A stretch of DNA of 63,825 nucleotides, counting the filler, from Choristocarpus tenellus KU-1152 (lineage: Eukaryota; Protista; Phaeophyceae): NCBI GenBank assembly GCA_964200185.2. It is 9 parts of 9 records of this genome, joined end to end, with 100 filler letters (N's around TTAATTAATTAA, not from the genome) between each part and the next. Parts side by side here need not be neighbours in the genome. Positions count along the whole stretch, not along the records: positions 48,982 to 52,459 come from CAXNAD020019764.1; 8 more parts are not named here. The stretch is one strand, 5' to 3'. Shown here one piece after another: positions 3,601 through 52,459 of the stretch. The notes below the pieces were generated by a model, which was not told where the DNA came from, did not search any database, and worked only from the letters and a program-made list of their open reading frames with translations. Position 1 is the stretch's first letter. Each line of letters begins with the position of its first letter. The position numbers and the translations under genes were made by a program.

Positions 3601-6600
3601 TCCACAAGATTAAAACAACCAAAAAGAGAGGATCAAAAGAAACGTAGTGCATTCCAACTACGGCTACAACAATAATGGAATAGAACTCCACAACAAAGGT
3701 ACTGGCTCTAAACGTAAGGGCGCAGAAAAGACAACTCACACTCTGTTGCCATGGCTTACCTGTGTACACAAAAGTCGAAAAACAATTGTCACCAATAACA
3801 TGTATTTAGCAGAGTGAGAAACACGCAGCCAACGCCCATTGTTAAACCTGCATGGGGGACTATAATTTCAATTCCACTCCCTCCTGCACCCCACTTCTAT
3901 GGACACACCTTGTCATGGTCTACCCCAATCAGTCCCAGAGCATGGACAAGTATGCCAAACACCAGTGGCGTCGTGCAGGTTAGCAGGAGGGTGCATTTTG
4001 CTACCCTTCGCAGGTACGCCAAGGAAGATTGTACAGGGTATGTAGCCTCAAGCGCACACATGGCTATTGAGCAGGCCATGCAGTGTGAATATGCAATTGG
4101 GAAGGGGTTGTAAGAAAAGCACATTCAGGGGGACTTCAACTTCAACGAGGATTTCCATTCATTCCCCAATCCAACACCTAGAGTTAATCATATCAATTCA
4201 ATCACCAAGAGGGTGCTACCCAGGGCCACACTCACCAATGTCCAACATGTCCCTACTACCAAAGACAGCAAAGTGCTAGCGCATCAACCGAGAATGGTGT
4301 AAAACTAGTAGTGACAAAATATTGTCACGACTTAACCCTCACCTCCCTGTTCCACTAGTGTTGCACCCGTACCACACTCCACTATCTCACCATTGCCAAA
4401 GAGCTCAATGGGCTGTGAATACCTTCTGCTGGCATCAAAAAGTGACTCTTGAGGAAAGGGCAACGTTTGCCATTGTGCCTGACCACTTACAGGCACCAAA
4501 ACACCCGTGCAACACACCCCTTACAGAAATAAACAGAAATACAACGTATCATATAACCTATCCTCTTCAGATCCTGCTGTACCTTTGAGCACCGAAGGAT
4601 CTCTGGTCCTCACCACCCCGCCCCCAAGGGCCGTGGCCCGTTTGATCACTCCAAAGCTGAAAAAAGCAATGTCACTGCTGGGGTGCCCCAGATACCCATG
4701 GAGCCCGGTGAACACCTGGGCACAGTCTTCCCACACCAGTAGGCCATGGCGGGCAGCCACTTCAGCCACAGGTTCCATGTCCACCTTTTCAGTGCCCCGT
4801 GCACAATGATTGAAGTGGGTATGGATTGGTAAAGAAATGGGTGGGAGATTTCTGTCTAAAAAATAATCTCTATCTAGGGTGAGGGGGGGTAAGTTTGGAC
4901 AAAACATAATATAGGTCCCATTGAACAAGTAAAGGTACTTCTGTTAAATAATGTGGACAATGGAAGCTGTAAGAGTATGCACATCAACCCTGACAGTGCA
5001 ATTTAAACAGCGCTTAGTCTCCCACTGCATTAAACCCTGCAATAAGCAATAGCATAATGGGAACCGAACTTGGGTTTCCCCTACAATACACCCTACATAA
5101 GCAATACCTACTCAATAAACATGAACAATCAGTAAATTCAAGAGGCGCCAACCAAAGGAAGACATTATCGGCAGTTGATCCCTGCAAAGGTTTTTCTGCT
5201 CAAAATGAATATCCCTAGAGGTATAAACTACAAGCACACGACATGAGAACATGGGGCAATCAGTGCAATACCGTACCTGAGCACCAAACACATGTGCAAT
5301 GTATATGGCTCGAACTGGTCTGCATTCATTGCAGCTAATCTTGCCATTTTCTCCATCACCAAGACCACCCGAGACATTTTTCAAACGTATAATTTCTGCT
5401 TCAATGGCGCCTGGCATGGGTGCCAGTGTATCAGGGTCCATGTCTACCGGTGCAGGCAGCAGCCCGTGTTCCTGCATTATGTACACCATATCTGGGATGG
5501 TCAATGCAGAGCACACCACACGACTTCCCGGCGGAAGCGCCAGTGCCTTTAGGTAAAGATCAAAGGAAGTTCGTACAGATAGAAAGGGTGCAATGGCAGC
5601 ATCACACTCTCTCCGTTCTATACTAAGGGCAACAGGAAGGGCATCATTACTTCCACCTCGAGATGAAGGCATCACGAACGCGTTCCTGAGGAAACAGGTA
5701 TCAACAGTATCAGTGGGATTGATAGGGTGTAATGATGTAAGGCACGGGTATGAAAAGGCAATTCAAGGGGGCAGGGGAGCTAGAGAGAGCGAAAGACACT
5801 ACAACAAAAATACATATTCCAAGTATGAGACATGAAATATGAAGCATCTTCACTACCTGCATAGGTTCTGCCCCCTGTACCTAATATTGGTAAGATATAT
5901 GACCCAGGATATGTTTATATGGAGTTACCCAGTTCAGCACGTCCACTATGCTATCTTTCACGTGTCATCCAATATCTTGTCCCCGTCCGACGCAGCACCC
6001 CTTACCATCAACATTTTCTGGGGTACCATTTGCATCATCAGTATTGAATATCTTAGCAGGGGGGGCGAGTCCCTAGCATCCACACTTTGAGCAAGACGCA
6101 ACACACACATATTTGTATACAGATAAACTCAACCTCGTCAGGGTGAATTAGAAAATACCCGACCCAGGTAACGTGAAATCAACACAAAATCGAGGACCTG
6201 TTGAGTCAATAATAGCTAACTTTGGTTGAAACACAGCATTTTCACAGTGCCGTTGCCCCACGCACTCCGCACCCGAGCTACCCAGTTAAGGTTATCGAAG
6301 TGGTCTATTGTAGCAAATATGTAGATCAAAAGCTAAATATGAGGTACCGACAGGGTTGACCTCAATGATGCCAGCTCAGTTAGACAAACCTTCCGGTCAA
6401 GGCACTTTTCCACGCTTCATCCAAGACCGTCATGGCCTCATCTCGTGCGTTGTCAGTGCCTCGATCTAAAAAGAGAGAGGTCAAGCTTAGTCGCGCAGCC
6501 CTCGCCAATTCCAAGAAGTTTATGTCAAGTCGCTTTCTTGCAATGATACTCAGTTGTAGCAAGCAGGATGCACGCTCCACAGAAAGCAAAACCTGGATAA

Positions 6601-7027: not shown

Positions 7028-8110
7028 ATGACTTCGGATAGCGTAACACTTCGTCGAACGGACAATATGGAGGATGATGTTCAATCGTCTAAACACGAGC
7101 TCAAGGAGCGTGCTGAGGAGAAAATCGAAGAAGGGAGCCATATTGCCTCCTTCACTACAAGGAGGATTGCAGATACGTTGTTGATGGGAAATGGGAACGC
7201 TAGTAGCTCCACCGCGTGTTCTTCAGGAATGACCAACCAAAGAGAGCGCGAAGAATTGTTGGCCGAGGCAAAGCTTTCGGAAGATGGGGGAGTCTTGGAG
7301 TCGCCAACCCTTGCGCGACAGACAAGCTTGATTTCAGCAGAGAGGACCGATGCCGAAGTTTTTGACGCCAAGACCACTGTTAGAGGAGGTAGGAGATGCT
7401 GTGGCTGGTGATAGATTTGATTGTCCTCTAGGTTTAGCTGTTCGCCCCCCAGCGGCCGCTAGAGGCCCAACTGGAAATGGGCGAACAACTGGAGGAATGA
7501 GACTTTTTTTGTAGTTGATTTGTTTTAACCTATTGTACCTTACCAGGGGGGAAATGGAAGTTACTGTGACTGGAGATAGATTTGATAGGAATCTGAGTTT
7601 GACTTTTGGTCCTCTCAGCTGCCGCTAGATGTCAGACTGGAAAGGGCCGGATGGTCATAGGAAACATGGCCCCCCGTTTCTGTAGTGAGAGGGTATAATT
7701 AAGCCGAGTAGAATGTGACTAGTTGTTTTTTCAGCGTCTTATATGTCATGTGCTGTATGTATGGGTGTCTGTAACTTTGATTCTGTGGTCCGTACCTTTA
7801 CTGGGTGTCTCGGGCTTTATCGATTGGTAACTGAAACAGAGAGTTTTACGAGTTTTTTTCATTTTGAAAGACTTCGAACTCCCTGACGATTCTAGGGAAA
7901 TGAAATTCAATTTTGTGCAATGATTTTATACTAAGATATTTGCCACGGCTGGCAACCGCAAGCCGAGGCGCTCCCCTGTATGTCACTTGTACAGTAATTG
8001 TAATGATAGGTATAAACCACAGATATGAATGGTGTCCCACAGTCGTTCTCACTTTTGTGAATGTGCACAACTATTTCAAATCCACTTCAGAGTTCTTTGT
8101 GGATGTCCTG
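7028..8110 (+). CDS. 5' exons of an uncharacterised protein divergent from the aminotransferase (3' part not resolved)
   Basis: ATG at 7028; exon 7028-7388 ends G|gtagga (phase 1); exon 8043-~8110 follows cccacag and continues in frame as ...KTTVRG-VVLTFVNVHNYFKSTSEFFVDVL. The N-terminus is acidic and low-complexity. Confidence 0.55.
7398..7720. repeat. Diverged ~165-bp tandem duplication in an intron
   Basis: gctgtggctggtgatagatttga...gccgctagaggcccaactggaaatggg (~7398-7480) recurs as actgtgactggagatagatttga...gccgctagatgtcagactggaaaggg (~7563-7646). Confidence 0.5.
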
Positions 8111-10297
8111 GTGTGAGTTGACTACAGTGGAGGTGTGGTTTGAGATGGAAGGAGAGGGATAAATTCCCTTATCCATACGCCGACATATCTGCAACCGATT
8201 AGTCCTGACACTGTTGTGCCAAAGTCTGCAACACATGCATAGATACCCATGACCATGTTCCCTCTGCACATGTTTCCCTCAAGCATACCATAGTAGATGA
8301 GAGTTGTATCATATTCTATCGCACATACCTTTCTGTTGTGTCTTACATATGATTAGGAGAATGCACTGCACAACCAGAATGTGCATGGTCTGTATGTTGA
8401 TGTGTAGCCCAAATTGAGCTGGTCTACCTCATCGGTGTTACACAATACTGTTTACCGCCATTCAATATCTCAAATCTCTGGGGTTAGATTGATGTGGTAA
8501 CGTGTTGTTCATTATGTTTTGACTTGGGATGAGTCTCACCCCACAAAGCAAAGGACCACTCAGACACAGAAGATAGATGTTTTCTTTGCCACAATAGCCA
8601 CTCCCAGAGCAAAACTTTGATGTACTGTGTTTAAATCAGAGGTCCCTACAAGTGCCTGTCTTGCCCACCACCCTTTATGTCTAACTCACTCCAAGTGTCA
8701 GTACAAGGCGCTCAGAAATATGGTCCGGTTTTGGTTCCCTCAGAAAGGGCAGTGAAAACAGAGGTGGATTAGACTAACATATTGACTTAATTTAAGGCAG
8801 ACTTGTGTCCACTAAGTACATCTCCTGCCTTTCCTCTTTCAACTGAGTACTCATGTACTAGGGTATCGTGGAGAGGAATTTCGACAGCTCAAAACTGTAG
8901 TTATGGTATTCGTGGTGAAACTGTTTTTTTATTCTGGTACTCCCTCTGCGTTTTATTAGGTAGGAGAACATTGCAGGACTAATCTGTGTAACATGGTGTG
9001 CATGTGGAAAACACAGCACCTCACCATAGGGCAATCCCTCTCAAGATACTGCTTCGAAGTATTAAGCTGTTTGCTATGTTCAGATCCTCACTCATCACTG
9101 GTTGGTGCTCCACACAGCAACTGAGTATGGCAAAACCTATTTGCTGATATCATGTGCAACGGATACAACCATTTATGTTTCATAGTCAATATTGATAACA
9201 GTACTACTACATCATTGTTCAACACATACTCCCTTGAGCCATTACATTCTGTTTACTATTTTTGAGCGGAACTGTTTCCTTGCTGCAGCAATGATTTCGA
9301 GTTGACATGTTGAAACTATGACTGGCATGGTTTGCTAGAGGGAAAGATGGTGATTTTTTGCAACGTATTCTGTTCTGGTGCAAACCACTGCTATCAACTG
9401 TTTTGAAGAGAACTTTGATCAACCTTTTAACTGTTTTACCATACTACACTTGGACTTGTCAGGTTCATGTGACCTATGTGTGCCTTGCACCCAGTTTCTG
9501 AATTCCTGCTGAGCAGGCAATGCATCCTTCCGCATCATGGATGGCACTTGCCCAAATTGTATTCTTCATTGTGACCTTGCTATCGAGGAAGTCATGGAAT
9601 GATTGGCAATGAACTTAAACTTACACTATCTATTCTTCGAGGAGGGCAAGACAAGAAGACCTAATTTGCCCCTAAAATGCTCTATTTTGAAGTAGCACTG
9701 GTTGTGACCCTGGCCTTCAAGTAGAGAATCTACGGGTTATTTGCAGTTATCGCTAAACCAAATGCGCTCTTCACATTTCACACAAAATACCCGACAGTGT
9801 CCTTTGACTCTCACAGCATGCCCCAATTATCCCACCCCTCGTAGTCACCTACATTCCATCATCTATCCACGGTCCATTCCAGTTTCCAGCTAAGAAAAAA
9901 AATCTCACTATTATTAGAACCTAATTTGAGGAATCAGCCTCATTGATTTTCTCAATATTGGCCCACAATCTCTGCCCTTGGTTACTTGAGTATTTCCAGG
10001 TTGCAATAAGGATTCTGCTTAGTTGAACGCTAACAATTTCCTGGGTTGGGATGAAAGAATAATAATATTTACAATTACAAAAATAATAATATAGTAACAA
10101 TGATGTACTTACAGTACCTACACCGATTTTATACCAAATATTATGTACCAAATCCATTTTGTACCTATTTTTTCGACATACTAAAAAAAATAGGATTTTG
10201 TACCGGAATTCTCGTATTCGGGCGACTTGATACAAAATCGGGGAGATATTCACGCGAGTTTGGCGCGCGCGTAAACTTTTCTCGCGAAAAGTGCCTT

Positions 10298-13642: not shown

Positions 13643-15289
13643 GCTCTAATGCACGGTGATCTACCTTCACAGTAGGTGGTGTGGCCGTACAAAGGAAGGT
13701 TACAGGTAGGTTGATTTTCAAGTTCAAATCCAGTGTTCTTCAGATTCAGAAGCATATGACTGGATTGGGGCAATCTGACTCAAGAACATATTCACATGAT
13801 GAAGCAAAAGAGGGTATGTTTTAGCTTTTAGCTTTCTTGTCCCTCCTATAAGCATGGCAACTAGAGGAATCTGCTTGCTATTCTTACTATTCCTCAACCT
13901 TTTCCTTGGTCTTCATTGTCCTGTCGTGTTTGCTGGTTGTGGTTACTCCACACCCTTGAAGCAAATTTCAAAAAGCCACAACTCTATGGCTCTCTAACAT
14001 TCACAATCAGGAAATCAACTCTGGGCACTTCAGTCTTTGCCACAGTTGCATCCCACCACTGTTACTATATTGGCATGATGTTTACACCGTTTTCCAAGCC
14101 GCCAACTCGTTCGTGCCAAAACAAAACATAAAACATTCCTTTGCCACATCCATCAATATTCTCTTGGGCTTGACTAATTCTGACAACTGGGACTGCAATC
14201 ATGACCTTTCGACGCTTCGTAAACTGTTCATTGCATGTAGCTTCCCATGCACACCACATGGATTCTGTTCAAGCAGCAAACACCTCTCTAGTTTTTCTTC
14301 TGTCACCTATTAAAAGAGGCAAGGTCCATGCACAGAGAGAGAGGCTTCCAATCATAGAGGAAAGAAAACAAGCTTTTCTTTGGTTGTCAAGAAAGCATGG
14401 TGAGCAAACATACAAACACAATGCATCCATTATTGAAATATGCCCCTATCTTTGCATGAAGCATCCAAACGCCATAAACCTATACAAATGTTATGGTGTT
14501 ACTAAGAAATGCATAGATTACATGGTCAACTCGTTCACCTCATCTGATAAACGAAATCAAAATTAGCAGTTTAGTCTTGCACCATACCCCAAAATAACTC
14601 TCACTCTCAGCAGTCAAGATCCAGTGCCAATTTTGTGGCACTCATGCCTCAATCCTTTTGCCTTTTCAGCACAAGATGGTGTGGGTGCATACGGATGACA
14701 ATATTTCTTGGTTGTTACATAAATTGATTTCATACCTTCAACTTTCATCACTCCAGAACAGAGAATCCTGATAGAGGTCAATATTATAAAATGTCACGTT
14801 TACTCAAAAGAAAGTACTCAAAAGACCACATATTACAGCAACTTTCTGCACCTCTCAAACCATGATACCAACAATCACTAAAAATATTTACAAATACCAC
14901 CAGTACGTACAGACGTATCATGGTGAGGATGTAGACAGGTCGGTGTGTCCAAGCCACATAATAACCGTTTGAAAATGTCTCTGCGTTTGGCAAGGGTCTA
15001 GGAAACTATCTGTATCCATATACTGCGAAGACCCCACTGATGATCTTTGAGGGGACACCCACCCAGAAAACATCTCGTACCCGTTGACCTTACCTATCTA
15101 CCACTTTCAGTCCGTTTTATTCTCATTCTTGGGTGTGCGTGCTGAGTTGAACTTGGAAAAGGCACAGTATGGCTCATATTTTCTGGGATTGCAGGAATCT
15201 GCCCTACATTTTCAACTCTAGGTCTTAGATGATGATTTGTTCAAGGCTCAGCACAGTGTCTCATATGCTACACTTCACATTTCTAGGCC

Positions 15290-48981: not shown

Positions 48982-49350
48982 GCATTGGAATGGTCCACCT
49001 GAACGACTTTATCCCCCCGTGCATCCACATACCCCCCTCCCTCCCCCTGCTCCCCCTCCACTGCCAGGATTATGCACCTTCCATCACCTTCCAACTGTTG
49101 CAAGATTCAAGTAGGGTGGGGACCAGTAGGGGGCGGGAAGCATGCCCCAGTACACAGACTCAGCATATTTCAATGTTTACTTGTGCATCACATGATGAAG
49201 AACAGCCCCCCAAAAAACAACTCACCAGAGCTTCATATCTCCTACCCTTATCTTTACTTGATTGCAATGCCCTCCTCTCAACAAGGGGACTATAGCAAGT
49301 GAAACAGAATCCTCCTTAGTGATCCCTACAATATATCGTCTCTATCGCAC

Positions 49351-49995
49351 CTCGATCATAGTGCCCTCTTGATGGTTGTACTCCCTTGCGATGGCGGCGG
49401 CCTCCTTTTCACCCACTAGTCCTTCGGGAAGGAGTTTACGGACATCTGTTCACTCGCCAAACGTGTTGTGCACGAGGGGATGAAGTCACGATGAAATGTT
49501 GGCTACAGACGGCTTGTGCAGTGAAATGGTATTCGTGCATATATTGATCGTTTAGAGTGCTTGTTGGAGTGGTTTCTTGAGTCTTGTAAACTCTATAGAT
49601 ATTGAAAAGTGCGGTAGTGACCTCGAAGAGTGAGGGAGGTCGTGCCTCGAACAAGGAAGGGAAACGACTAATTGAAGCAGGTTCAGTGTAGGTTCTTCGT
49701 TAAGTTGCGTGCATCTTTAGCAACCGATGCGAGGGAGACGTGCGAGAGGACCCGAACAGGTCATGTATTAGTGAATTTCCACAATTAGCATTAGGTCGTG
49801 CATGGTGCAAACTTAGAGCGAGGGGGTAGCGGCGGGGATGGGGGCGACGCAGTCATGTGTGACTCTCTTGCCTGCCAAGACGTCCAGGAACTGCCCTGGA
49901 GGGCTGCTGAGGAGCATGTTCCTGGCGATCTCCATTTTTTCTTCGTCACCTACAGGCCCCATCTCGTCCTCATACTCTCCTGCAAAATCCGCCAT
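49351..49995 (-). CDS. CAPZA: F-actin capping protein alpha subunit, first two exons (3' end off contig)
   Basis: Exon 49995-49872 ...DEEKMEIARNMLLSSPPGQFLDVLA ends G|gcaaga (GC donor); exon 49445-49351 DVRKLLPEGLVGEKEAAAIAREYN. Matches the CP-alpha N-terminal signature EK..IA..F...PPGE...V..DVR.LL...YN. Confidence 0.9.
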
Positions 49996-50992
49996 ACTAC
50001 TAGAGTCGAGGGAACGGAATGGGGGGTCCATCAACGTGGTTGGGGCTGCGGTATGAACTGGGTCGTAGATGGGCTTGGGGGGTGGGTTCAATTGTCAATC
50101 ATAGGAGTCAGTGATGAGCTGTGATGAAGTGGATATCCCCCAGAAGGAGAAGGGCAGGAAGAAACACAGAACCAATATGCGTTGGCAACGCATGTGCAGG
50201 TGGAGGCAAGGTGGAGCGCCAAGAACGCAACGCAAGAGGAATCGCAGAAGCAGTTCAGTGAGAAAATCACGGAAGAAAGGTGATAATGCAAAGATCAAGT
50301 AAGAGCTGGTGTTTACACAGCAAGGGCAATGGAGCCCATATGACACACTAGGGAAGTCATGGGCATCAGTGTCTGGATACATTCCTCGATTTGTCCACAG
50401 CTTTGAGGATGTGCCCACAGTAGAGGTGACCAAGAGCAAGCAAATCGATGCCCTTTCCCACACACCCCCACCATCCAATTCCAGAGCTGGGTACACCCCG
50501 GGGCTATCTCACCTCTCCTACCTACAATATTGTGCAGGGTCGTCGTCTAAACGTCTAATCGTAGTGATGATCCGTTCCAATCTTTCCGGTGGTTCAATGG
50601 CAAGTTCTATATTTCTTGGTAGGAGTTGAAAATTGTTGATATCTTTTTTGGTTTTATCAAGTCGAATGAATATGTCTACATGCCAACAATTAACTGAGTT
50701 GGGGTAACCAAAGAAGACACCATCAAGATACCGATTACGGAATCGCCCACATCATCGAGTTGGTTGACGTATTTGGGCGTGATACAGTGCATTATTAGAA
50801 ACGGTGGTGACTGAGGAAGTGCTCGGAACGGAAGACTTGTTTGCTGAGATAAACGATTGGATTCTTTCAGGCAAAGGAGGGTCTACATAGTGATAAGTTT
50901 TTAGGGGATGCTGGAGGGCTCCACCAGAGTCACAACGTAATTTAGCAATTTGGGGAGCTATCAGGGAAATCTGCCACTACTGAGGTGCAGAC
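49996..50992. promoter_or_regulatory. Putative bidirectional promoter and 5' UTRs between the capping protein alpha and beta genes
   Basis: 997 bp between divergent ATGs (49995 on -, 50993 on +), with no credible CDS in between. Confidence 0.55.
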
Positions 50993-52316
50993 ATGTCGAC
51001 GACGAATGTCCCTATCACGTCCTGCCTTAACCTCATGAGGCGCTTGCCTCCAAAGGACATCGAGACGAGCCTAACTGGCCTGCTTAACCTCGTGCCAGAT
51101 GCAACCGATGAACTGCTGCAGAGAGTGGATCAGGCAAGTAAACTAGCCCTTGGAGACACACGAAATGCTCGATTTAGCGTAGTACGGAAGCTAAAAACCT
51201 GCCTAATCTGATGTAGCTATCGCCCTTCCCATTCTTCCTACTCATGTAATGCCGACCTTGGATAGCACCAAAGTCCCAAAGTGCGTACAACTTCATGTGC
51301 TATACCTCTGGGACTCATGGTGTGCCTTTCGACCCTAAGCCTATCCATGAAACCATCCCGATACTTGTGGCGTCTCTCACACCCAACCTTCACTCTTCTT
51401 CCCACCATGCAAACTAAAAACCTCTCCTCCCTTCCCACCTCCTCCATCTTTGTATAGACAAACGATATGAGAGTGCTGAAAATATGATCTGATCCTCAAT
51501 ACTACTAAGCCACCCCTCTTGCCCATCTTTCTCTGCCGCAGCCTTTACATGAGGCGACTGACACTGACACAGGGAGGCGATTCCTAATGTGCGAGTACAA
51601 CCGAGACGCCAACTCCTACCGGAGCCCTTGGAGCAACAAGTACTATCCACCACTCGAGGACGGCTACACTCCGGGAGACAGGCTCCGTAAGATGGAGGTA
51701 TATGTCTCAACCCTTTTTGCTTTTTGTAGGACTCAAGTCACCCTTACATAACGTATATATATATATATATATATATATATCAAACAGGTGGAATAGGGGA
51801 CGACATTCACAGGAGTAACATAACCTCGTATAATTCGCTCTTTCAAAGGCTAGCTTGCACCTTTGAAAGCAGTATTCCCCATAGTACACAATGTGATTCT
51901 CATGTCAACATGTCTTGGAACCTCCAGGTGACATCGCTGGCAGTGCCAAAAATTGTTGTGCCACGACCAAGGCTGGAACGGTGTGGATCACAACTAACTT
52001 ACTAGTGCCTTTTTGCTTTTTTGGTCCAAATACTATTCTTTTCAAAACAAATGATAGCAAATTCCACTTTCTTTACTCCCCTCCTTTCCTACCACTAAAG
52101 GAGGATGCTAATCTCTTATTGGACGCCTACCGTGAGCTCTACTACGGCGGAGGTGTCAGCTCTGTGTACCTGTGGGACCTTGAGGATGGAGAGGGGGGTG
52201 GGGGCAGTGCAGGGGCAGGGAGCTTTGCAGGATGCTTCTTAGTGATGAAGTGTGTGGGGCAGGAGGGGGAAGGGGAGGATCTTTTGGGCTCTTGGGAAAG
52301 CTCTCATGTGGTACAG
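50993..52316 (+). CDS. CAPZB: F-actin capping protein beta subunit, first three exons (3' end off contig)
   Basis: Exons 50993-51133 (CLNLMRRLPP...LLQRVDQ, ends CAG|gcaagt), 51542-51697 (PL...FLMCEYNRDANSYRSPWSNKYYPPLEDG), 52101-52316 (AN..LDAYRELYYGGGVSSVYLWDL...FAGCFL...WESSHVV). Confidence 0.95.
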
Positions 52317-52459
52317 GTCAGAAGGCATCAACATAGGGAGGCGGGTTTTTTGGGACTAGTTATGCATTCAACAGCAAGAAGTGGGGGAGGGAGGAGCAGG
52401 GGGGGGGGGGGGGAGGTGCTTGTTTCAGGAAGATGTTTTTCTGTCTGAATAACAAAACA

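Follow-up and report, generated by a model that had tools for sequence, protein, structure and literature searches.

A head-to-head pair of F-actin capping protein alpha and beta genes in Choristocarpus tenellus and other members of the PX clade

Divergent histone gene pairs (H2A-H2B and H3-H4) place the two halves of an obligate heterodimer head-to-head over a short spacer; they are multi-copy, widespread in eukaryotes, and driven by demonstrated shared cell-cycle elements. Apart from the histones, we know of few long-lived divergent pairs that encode both subunits of a heterodimer that is obligate and universal in eukaryotes. Here, we describe a head-to-head pair of the two F-actin capping protein (CP) genes, CP-alpha and CP-beta, in the brown alga Choristocarpus tenellus KU-1152 (assembly GCA_964200185.2). 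The window, i.e., the whole stretch of DNA that was analyzed, is 63,825 nucleotides long and joins nine parts, and the part under study (positions 48982-52459) is the entire contig CAXNAD020019764.1, with 3,478 bp, 49% G+C, and no N. The CP pair resembles the histone pairs in its arrangement but, unlike them, is a single locus restricted to one algal clade in which no shared element was found.

Other described systems share some of these features. In brown algae, M1PDH3 and M1Pase1 are functionally coupled and lie head-to-head in all species, with a spacer of about 0.5 to 10 kb (bioRxiv 10.1101/2024.02.19.579948). However, they encode two enzymes of one pathway rather than a heterodimer, and their arrangement already differs in the sister taxa Schizocladia and Heterosigma, whereas the CP pair reaches the Xanthophyceae and Phaeothamniophyceae. 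Generic close divergent pairs of Ectocarpus have the same orientation and, if the spacer is short, likely a shared nucleosome-depleted region, but they are mostly functionally unrelated, with uncorrelated expression (PMC7784034), while the CP partner is the cognate subunit and is conserved across classes. In mammals, CAPZA3-PLCZ1 combines a CP subunit gene with a bidirectional promoter and is conserved among vertebrates (PMC7138945; PMC2871058 supplement), yet it is testis-specific and the partner encodes phospholipase C zeta, not CP-beta. The COL4A1-COL4A2-type pairs of animals (PMC12141075) also hold the chains of a heteromer head-to-head over a large clade; those paralogues arose recently and multiplied pairwise, whereas the paralogous CP-alpha and CP-beta genes are ancient, have diverged strongly, and were apparently joined secondarily. 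The CP pair is thus an addition to a known category, that of conserved divergent pairs of functionally coupled genes. Regarding capping protein itself, the only pairs involving CP genes in a gene-order survey of 64 species are CAPZA1-ST7L and CAPZA3-PLCZ1 (PMC2871058 supplement), and the brown-alga genome preprint, which also describes the general shortness of divergent spacers, does not mention capping protein (bioRxiv 10.1101/2024.02.19.579948). A search of the full-text literature found no report of linked CP-alpha and CP-beta genes, in agreement with an earlier reading of the window made without database searches (hereafter, the sequence-only reading), which had not known the pairing to be described.

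The divergent capping protein genes and their distribution

The contig holds the 5′ parts of the single-locus CP-alpha and CP-beta orthologues, divergently transcribed, as a pair inherited within the PX clade. The plus-strand gene is CP-beta (PF01115, the CAPZB orthologue). All searches were run per exon or with stop-free reference frames, and exons were joined only for comparison with the model deposited at the National Center for Biotechnology Information (NCBI). Exon 1 (50993-51133, with the ATG at 50993) matches PF01115 positions 2-40 with 36.3 bits, exon 2 (51542-51697) positions 41-92 with 77.5 bits, and exon 3 (52101-52316) positions 94-151 with 59.3 bits, so that the three exons tile the profile from 2 to 151 and each of them singly exceeds the gathering score of 26.3. 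Exon 1 is 72 to 77% identical to exon 1 of Ectocarpus and Pylaiella, and exon 3 matched CapZ-beta chains in PDB (E of about 2e-8). Profile positions 152-237, including the C-terminal actin-binding “tentacle,” fall off the contig, which ends within intron 3 at 52459.

The minus-strand gene was confirmed by homology as CP-alpha (PF01267, the CAPZA orthologue), because its exons line up, in conserved order, with genes in Ectocarpus, Pylaiella, Tribonema, and Phaeothamnion that carry PF01267. Orthology was decisive here: the 41- and 31-residue translations of exon 1 (49995-49872, with the start codon at 49995) and exon 2 (49445-49351, 95 nucleotides) gave no match in a PF01267 scan. In PDB, at E values up to 10, all 10 matches of exon 1 were CP-alpha N termini (residues 1-34), with weak scores (E of about 0.14), and neither exon 2 nor exon 3 matched CP-alpha chains. 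Exons 1 and 2 were instead identified by tblastn to the orthologues, with E values for exon 1 of 4e-14 in Ectocarpus, 1e-13 in Pylaiella, 2e-7 in Tribonema, and 3e-9 in Phaeothamnion, and for exon 2 of 2e-13 in Pylaiella (with flanks), 2e-11 in Ectocarpus, and 1e-5 in Phaeothamnion, the match in Tribonema being weaker. The PF01267 protein P0171 also matched the window (E of 1e-4 and 3e-3). A partial third exon (49094-48982, 37 codons and 2 nucleotides, cut by the contig end) is newly recognized. Although without a Pfam match alone, it matches Ectocarpus alpha exon 3 (BLASTP E of 2e-5), its acceptor (caacag|TTGGAA) follows exon 2 in phase 0, and its end carries the conserved VDH motif. The CP-alpha/CP-beta feature therefore covers the full contig, 48982-52459, and is wider than the interval 49351-52316. 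Intron 1 of CP-alpha has the same position and phase in Choristocarpus, Ectocarpus, Pylaiella, and Phaeothamnion, where it splits the same Asp codon (G|AY) with the acceptor CAG|AY.

The two start codons are separated by a spacer of 997 bp (49996-50992), which presumably comprises the 5′ untranslated regions and the promoter region. The sequence-only reading had placed the CP-alpha start at 49995 on the minus strand and the CP-beta start at 50993 on the plus strand with nothing coding in between. These positions and the orientation proved correct, and the spacer showed no Pfam match on its open reading frames (ORFs), no transfer RNA (tRNA), no Rfam match at E values up to 0.1, and no notable repeat. 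Searches of the whole contig for tandem or inverted repeats, Rfam families, and tRNAs likewise revealed no hidden features. An in-frame ATG at 50031 would lengthen CP-alpha by 12 residues and reduce the spacer to 961 bp; in the orthologous alpha genes, however, the start codon corresponds to 49995, not 50031.

According to the NCBI taxonomy, Choristocarpus tenellus belongs to the Phaeophyceae, inside the “PX clade,” a name used here for the brown algae, Xanthophyceae, and Phaeothamniophyceae. The sequence-only reading had called for a search of stramenopiles and other protists, which recovered a PF01267 gene divergent from a PF01115 gene, in the same orientation, in four relatives. The spacer measures 1,602 bp in Ectocarpus sp. 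CCAP 1310/34 (L002, CACKRE030004556.1; alpha ATG at 6413, beta ATG at 8016), 5,073 bp in Pylaiella littoralis (L001; 4927 and 10001), 148 bp in the xanthophyte Tribonema minus (L003; 9852 and 10001), and 263 bp in Phaeothamnion confervicola of the Phaeothamniophyceae (L012; 9220 and 9484). No Pfam-positive ORF was found in the 5-kb spacer of Pylaiella. Together with Choristocarpus, the adjacency is thus seen in five genomes from three classes. The CP-beta genes compared are orthologues, since the PX-clade sequences form one clade in the CP-beta tree (support of 99/97). Two further loci were uninformative, with only 341 bp upstream of CP-beta in Chrysoparadoxa (L004) and 2,243 bp in a brown-alga-like sequence (L009).

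The survey as a whole covered about a dozen lineages, leaving out raphidophytes, eustigmatophytes, chrysophyte genomes, and Schizocladia, and the absence of alpha in unannotated contigs was judged by tblastn with P0171 and by Pfam scans of neighboring ORFs. No CP-alpha gene lies within 10 kb of CP-beta in the diatom Thalassiosira profunda, the fungus Coprinopsis cinerea, the oomycete Phytophthora fragariae (where the divergent neighbor of CP-beta is RNA polymerase I A49), the pelagophyte Chrysophaeum taylorii (with thymidylate kinase in that position), or a marine pinguiophyte-like alga whose CP-beta is sister to that of the pinguiophyte Phaeomonas. The same held for several metagenomic eukaryotes, in which CP-beta neighbors fumarase, TFIIA-gamma, Xrn1-like, PIG-M, and other genes. 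Among 80 loci in a metagenome scan, mostly transcript contigs of about 1 kb, some 12 had usable flanks and none of these carried alpha.

Retention of the pair and possible promoter sharing

The pair has been kept since its origin while other neighboring genes changed between classes. In tblastn comparisons of flanking ORF fragments of at least 30 residues, no gene besides the pair was common to different classes, and flank synteny (a PhyH gene) was kept solely between two Ectocarpales, Ectocarpus and Pylaiella. These comparisons, which rest on short flanks and carry no genome-wide statistic, suggest that the pair is an isolated block of conserved microsynteny.

The short spacers bear on how the pair may be expressed. 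Since the two ATG codons of Tribonema and Phaeothamnion lie only 148 and 263 bp apart, respectively, the transcription start sites (TSSs) must be closer than those distances, and the promoters therefore overlap in both species. We adopted an operational definition of a bidirectional-promoter pair as a head-to-head pair with a TSS-to-TSS distance below 1 kb. Divergent genes of Ectocarpus that lie within about 600 bp of each other have one nucleosome-depleted region and histone-mark peaks in common (PMC7784034). The overlapping promoters may act as one functional bidirectional promoter. In the proposed scenario, both genes would be driven from a shared or overlapping promoter region, probably a nucleosome-depleted region that they have in common, and such overlap would have been physically unavoidable in a compact ancestral state. 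The compact genomes of Tribonema and Phaeothamnion would still hold shared-promoter units, whereas the brown-alga spacer would later have expanded to 1 to 5 kb, so that each gene may now own its core promoter. A break within the spacer would damage one of the promoters, which could account for the retention of the pair, and linkage would ensure that two partners needed in an obligate 1:1 ratio have one chromatin state and one copy number in common. We lean, with modest confidence, toward the pair having originated as such a shared- or overlapping-promoter unit that has since been held together by constraint; its retention for more than about 450 million years while flanking synteny was lost favors this reading.

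Several points weigh against this reading. A comparison of the five spacers by BLASTN with a word size of 7 and by shared 7- to 10-mers relative to shuffled sequences yielded nothing above expectation, and no block was common even to the Ectocarpus and Pylaiella spacers. The spacers of these two species (1.6 and 5.1 kb) also exceed the distance of about 600 bp up to which a shared nucleosome-depleted region was observed. Across the Ectocarpus genome, 61.7% of genes belong to divergent pairs, and transcript levels do not correlate between the two members of a pair (r = 0.042 overall, 0.054 for those less than 600 bp apart) (PMC7784034). Stoichiometry moreover does not need gene linkage, since in Drosophila each of the CP subunits stabilizes the protein levels of the other (PMC4008575). 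Finally, the flank-synteny test spans ±10 kb or less, with one to four genes per side.

These points lend weight to a neutral alternative, in which one rearrangement made the two genes adjacent head-to-head and the adjacency survived without any benefit from co-regulation, because a short spacer between divergent genes leaves little room for a harmless break and because genes in these genomes are divergently oriented by default. An abundance of divergent, uncorrelated pairs in Ectocarpus, a spacer that drifts freely between 148 bp and 5 kb with no conserved sequence found in it, and a CP stoichiometry that can be fixed posttranslationally are all as this alternative would have it. Against it, the pair was kept in five of five informative PX genomes, spanning three classes and more than about 450 million years, although no other adjacency in the examined flanks survives between classes, and it was retained in brown algae despite the growth of the spacer to 1 to 5 kb. 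The identity of the partner also argues against chance. The number of TSS-adjacent intergenic regions in Ectocarpus, about 10^4 (PMC7784034), gives a probability of about 1e-4 that the divergent neighbor of a given gene is one specified gene, and here, in five genomes of three classes, it is exactly the obligate heterodimer subunit. We therefore favor constraint, while the neutral alternative, at somewhat below an even chance, keeps substantial weight.

A stronger version of the constraint reading holds that the pair is a selectively maintained module for co-expression and co-dosage, in which a single bidirectional promoter sets the 1:1 ratio, with one origin in the PX ancestor and the value of a clean synapomorphy. 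Taken as a whole, we consider this combination unlikely. Its promoter component, a shared bidirectional promoter that would enforce 1:1 co-expression, had been proposed in the sequence-only reading, with the histone pairs as the analogy, and is only partly supported by the comparisons above. A clade with spacers ranging from 148 bp to 5 kb offers a natural experiment on whether linkage contributes to stoichiometry and dosage balance, and the 148-bp spacer of Tribonema may be of use as a compact bidirectional promoter in algal engineering.

Telomere-like repeats were observed in two of the longer spacers. In Pylaiella, an interstitial (CTAACC)6 array, a rotation of CCCTAA, adjoins a 26-bp tandem array (L001:8865-8901), and in Ectocarpus two TTAGGG copies lie 12 bp apart near the alpha start (L002:6494-6511). 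No such repeats occur in the short Tribonema and Phaeothamnion spacers.

Origin and age of the pair

The split between brown algae and Schizocladia is dated to about 458 million years ago, and the Xanthophyceae and Phaeothamniophyceae branch outside it; the pair is therefore older than this date. Most likely, judging from its distribution, the pair arose once, by relocation in the ancestor of the PX clade, more than about 450 million years ago, because one gain fits the distribution whereas ancient linkage requires many losses. The sequence-only reading had left both an ancient and a lineage-specific linkage open. Its lineage-specific branch is borne out by the presence of the pair in three PX classes, and its ancient branch is disfavored by the absence of the pair from five other lineages and several metagenomic eukaryotes.

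Under the ancient alternative, the linkage would be a remnant of the duplication that gave rise to alpha and beta before the last eukaryotic common ancestor, subsequently lost in most lineages. The established fact that the two subunits share a fold and the sampling of only about a dozen lineages speak for it. Nevertheless, the pair is absent from oomycete, diatom, pelagophyte, pinguiophyte-like, and fungal genomes, no alpha-beta pair appears in the 64-species survey of conserved gene pairs, many independent losses would be needed instead of one gain, and duplication normally gives tandem rather than head-to-head copies; we thus regard an ancient linkage as highly improbable. That the locus is an assembly artefact, a chimera of two unlinked genes on a contig of merely 3.5 kb ending in low-complexity, G-rich runs, has a negligible probability, since the same arrangement is found on contigs of 13 kb to 1.1 Mb in four independently assembled species, which also makes implausible the misassembly that the sequence-only reading had named as a risk.

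The pair could serve as a rare-genomic-change marker of the PX clade. If it proves to be a true synapomorphy, it could help to place the disputed Chrysoparadoxa, Schizocladia, and raphidophytes relative to the brown algae.

Gene structures and annotation

The CP-beta coding sequence is interrupted by two complete introns and the 5′ part of a third. Intron 1 (51134-51541, plus strand) was assigned by homology as GC-AG (CAG|GCAAGT), intron 2 (51698-52100) is GT-AG and contains a (TA)13 microsatellite (51754-51779), and intron 3 (52317-52459) reaches the contig end. The donor that follows exon 3 (CAG|GT at 52316) is also present in Ectocarpus, Pylaiella, and the brown-alga-like L009. With these homology-based exons, the translation aligns to nine orthologues without insertions or deletions. 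The NCBI model of CP-beta (P0001) is partial, with 186 residues; it is 100% identical to the exon 3 translation, and blocks that match it occur in all three exons. However, it extends exon 1 to 51137, using a GT located 4 nucleotides beyond the GC donor, and starts exon 2 at 51510, thereby inserting 12 residues (ATTPLAHLSLPQ) at the conserved VDQ|PL junction, an insertion seen in none of the nine orthologues. A second shifted junction (51698-52103) adds one residue that is equally absent from all nine.

In CP-alpha (minus strand), intron 1 (49871-49446, 426 nucleotides) was likewise assigned by homology as GC-AG, with the donor CAG|GCAAGA at 49866-49871, and intron 2 (49350-49095, 256 nucleotides) is GT-AG, with the donor GAG|GTGCGA and the acceptor CAACAG. 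Tribonema lacks alpha intron 1 (L003:9760-9852), and its coding sequence runs uninterrupted (...VLEDLLKLVP...) through the site at which brown algae and Phaeothamnion carry the phase-1 intron.

Donor usage varies among the orthologues. The donors of CP-beta intron 1 and alpha intron 1 are GC in Choristocarpus and GT in the orthologues, while that of CP-beta intron 2 is GC in Ectocarpus (L002:9236), Pylaiella (L001:14241), and L009 (L009:6025) and GT in Choristocarpus, Tribonema, and Phaeothamnion. GC-AG introns are thus likely in these CP genes. Brown-alga CP-beta also carries, within exon 3 (52149-52316 in Choristocarpus), a Gly/Ser-rich insertion flanked by the conserved motifs WDLE and FAGCFL; it reads GEGGGGSAGAGS in Choristocarpus, is longer in Pylaiella, and is shorter or absent in non-brown stramenopiles.

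Both ends of the contig lie near low-complexity sequence, namely, a G15 run within CP-beta intron 3 (52399-52413) and a G/C-rich stretch at 49033-49056, which may explain why the assembly breaks there.

Errors in deposited models, including the likely missed GC-AG introns of Choristocarpus, matter to users of these new genomes. Those of Ectocarpus are incorrect here: the 396-residue “alpha” runs as far as 8059 and takes in CP-beta exon 1 (8016-8156), whereas the 157-residue “beta” begins at exon 3 and leaves the last beta exon (about 13775-13960) outside the model. A further CP-beta sequence, P0153 (CAM9097102.1, from a 199-kb contig labeled “Ectocarpus fasciculatus”), groups with chrysophyte and bolidophyte sequences rather than with brown algae, and its 90% cluster includes members from a Joint Genome Institute (JGI) metagenome and from an unrelated sequencing run. 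A second brown-alga CP-beta paralogue is disfavored by this tree placement and by the environmental cluster members; P0153 is probably the CP-beta of an organism that contaminated the culture assembly. Lastly, P0176 of Nemacystus decipiens (g16314.t1, 670 residues) shares a 90% cluster with a 306-residue Cladosiphon CP-beta and, at twice that length, probably reflects the fusion of two neighboring genes in one model.

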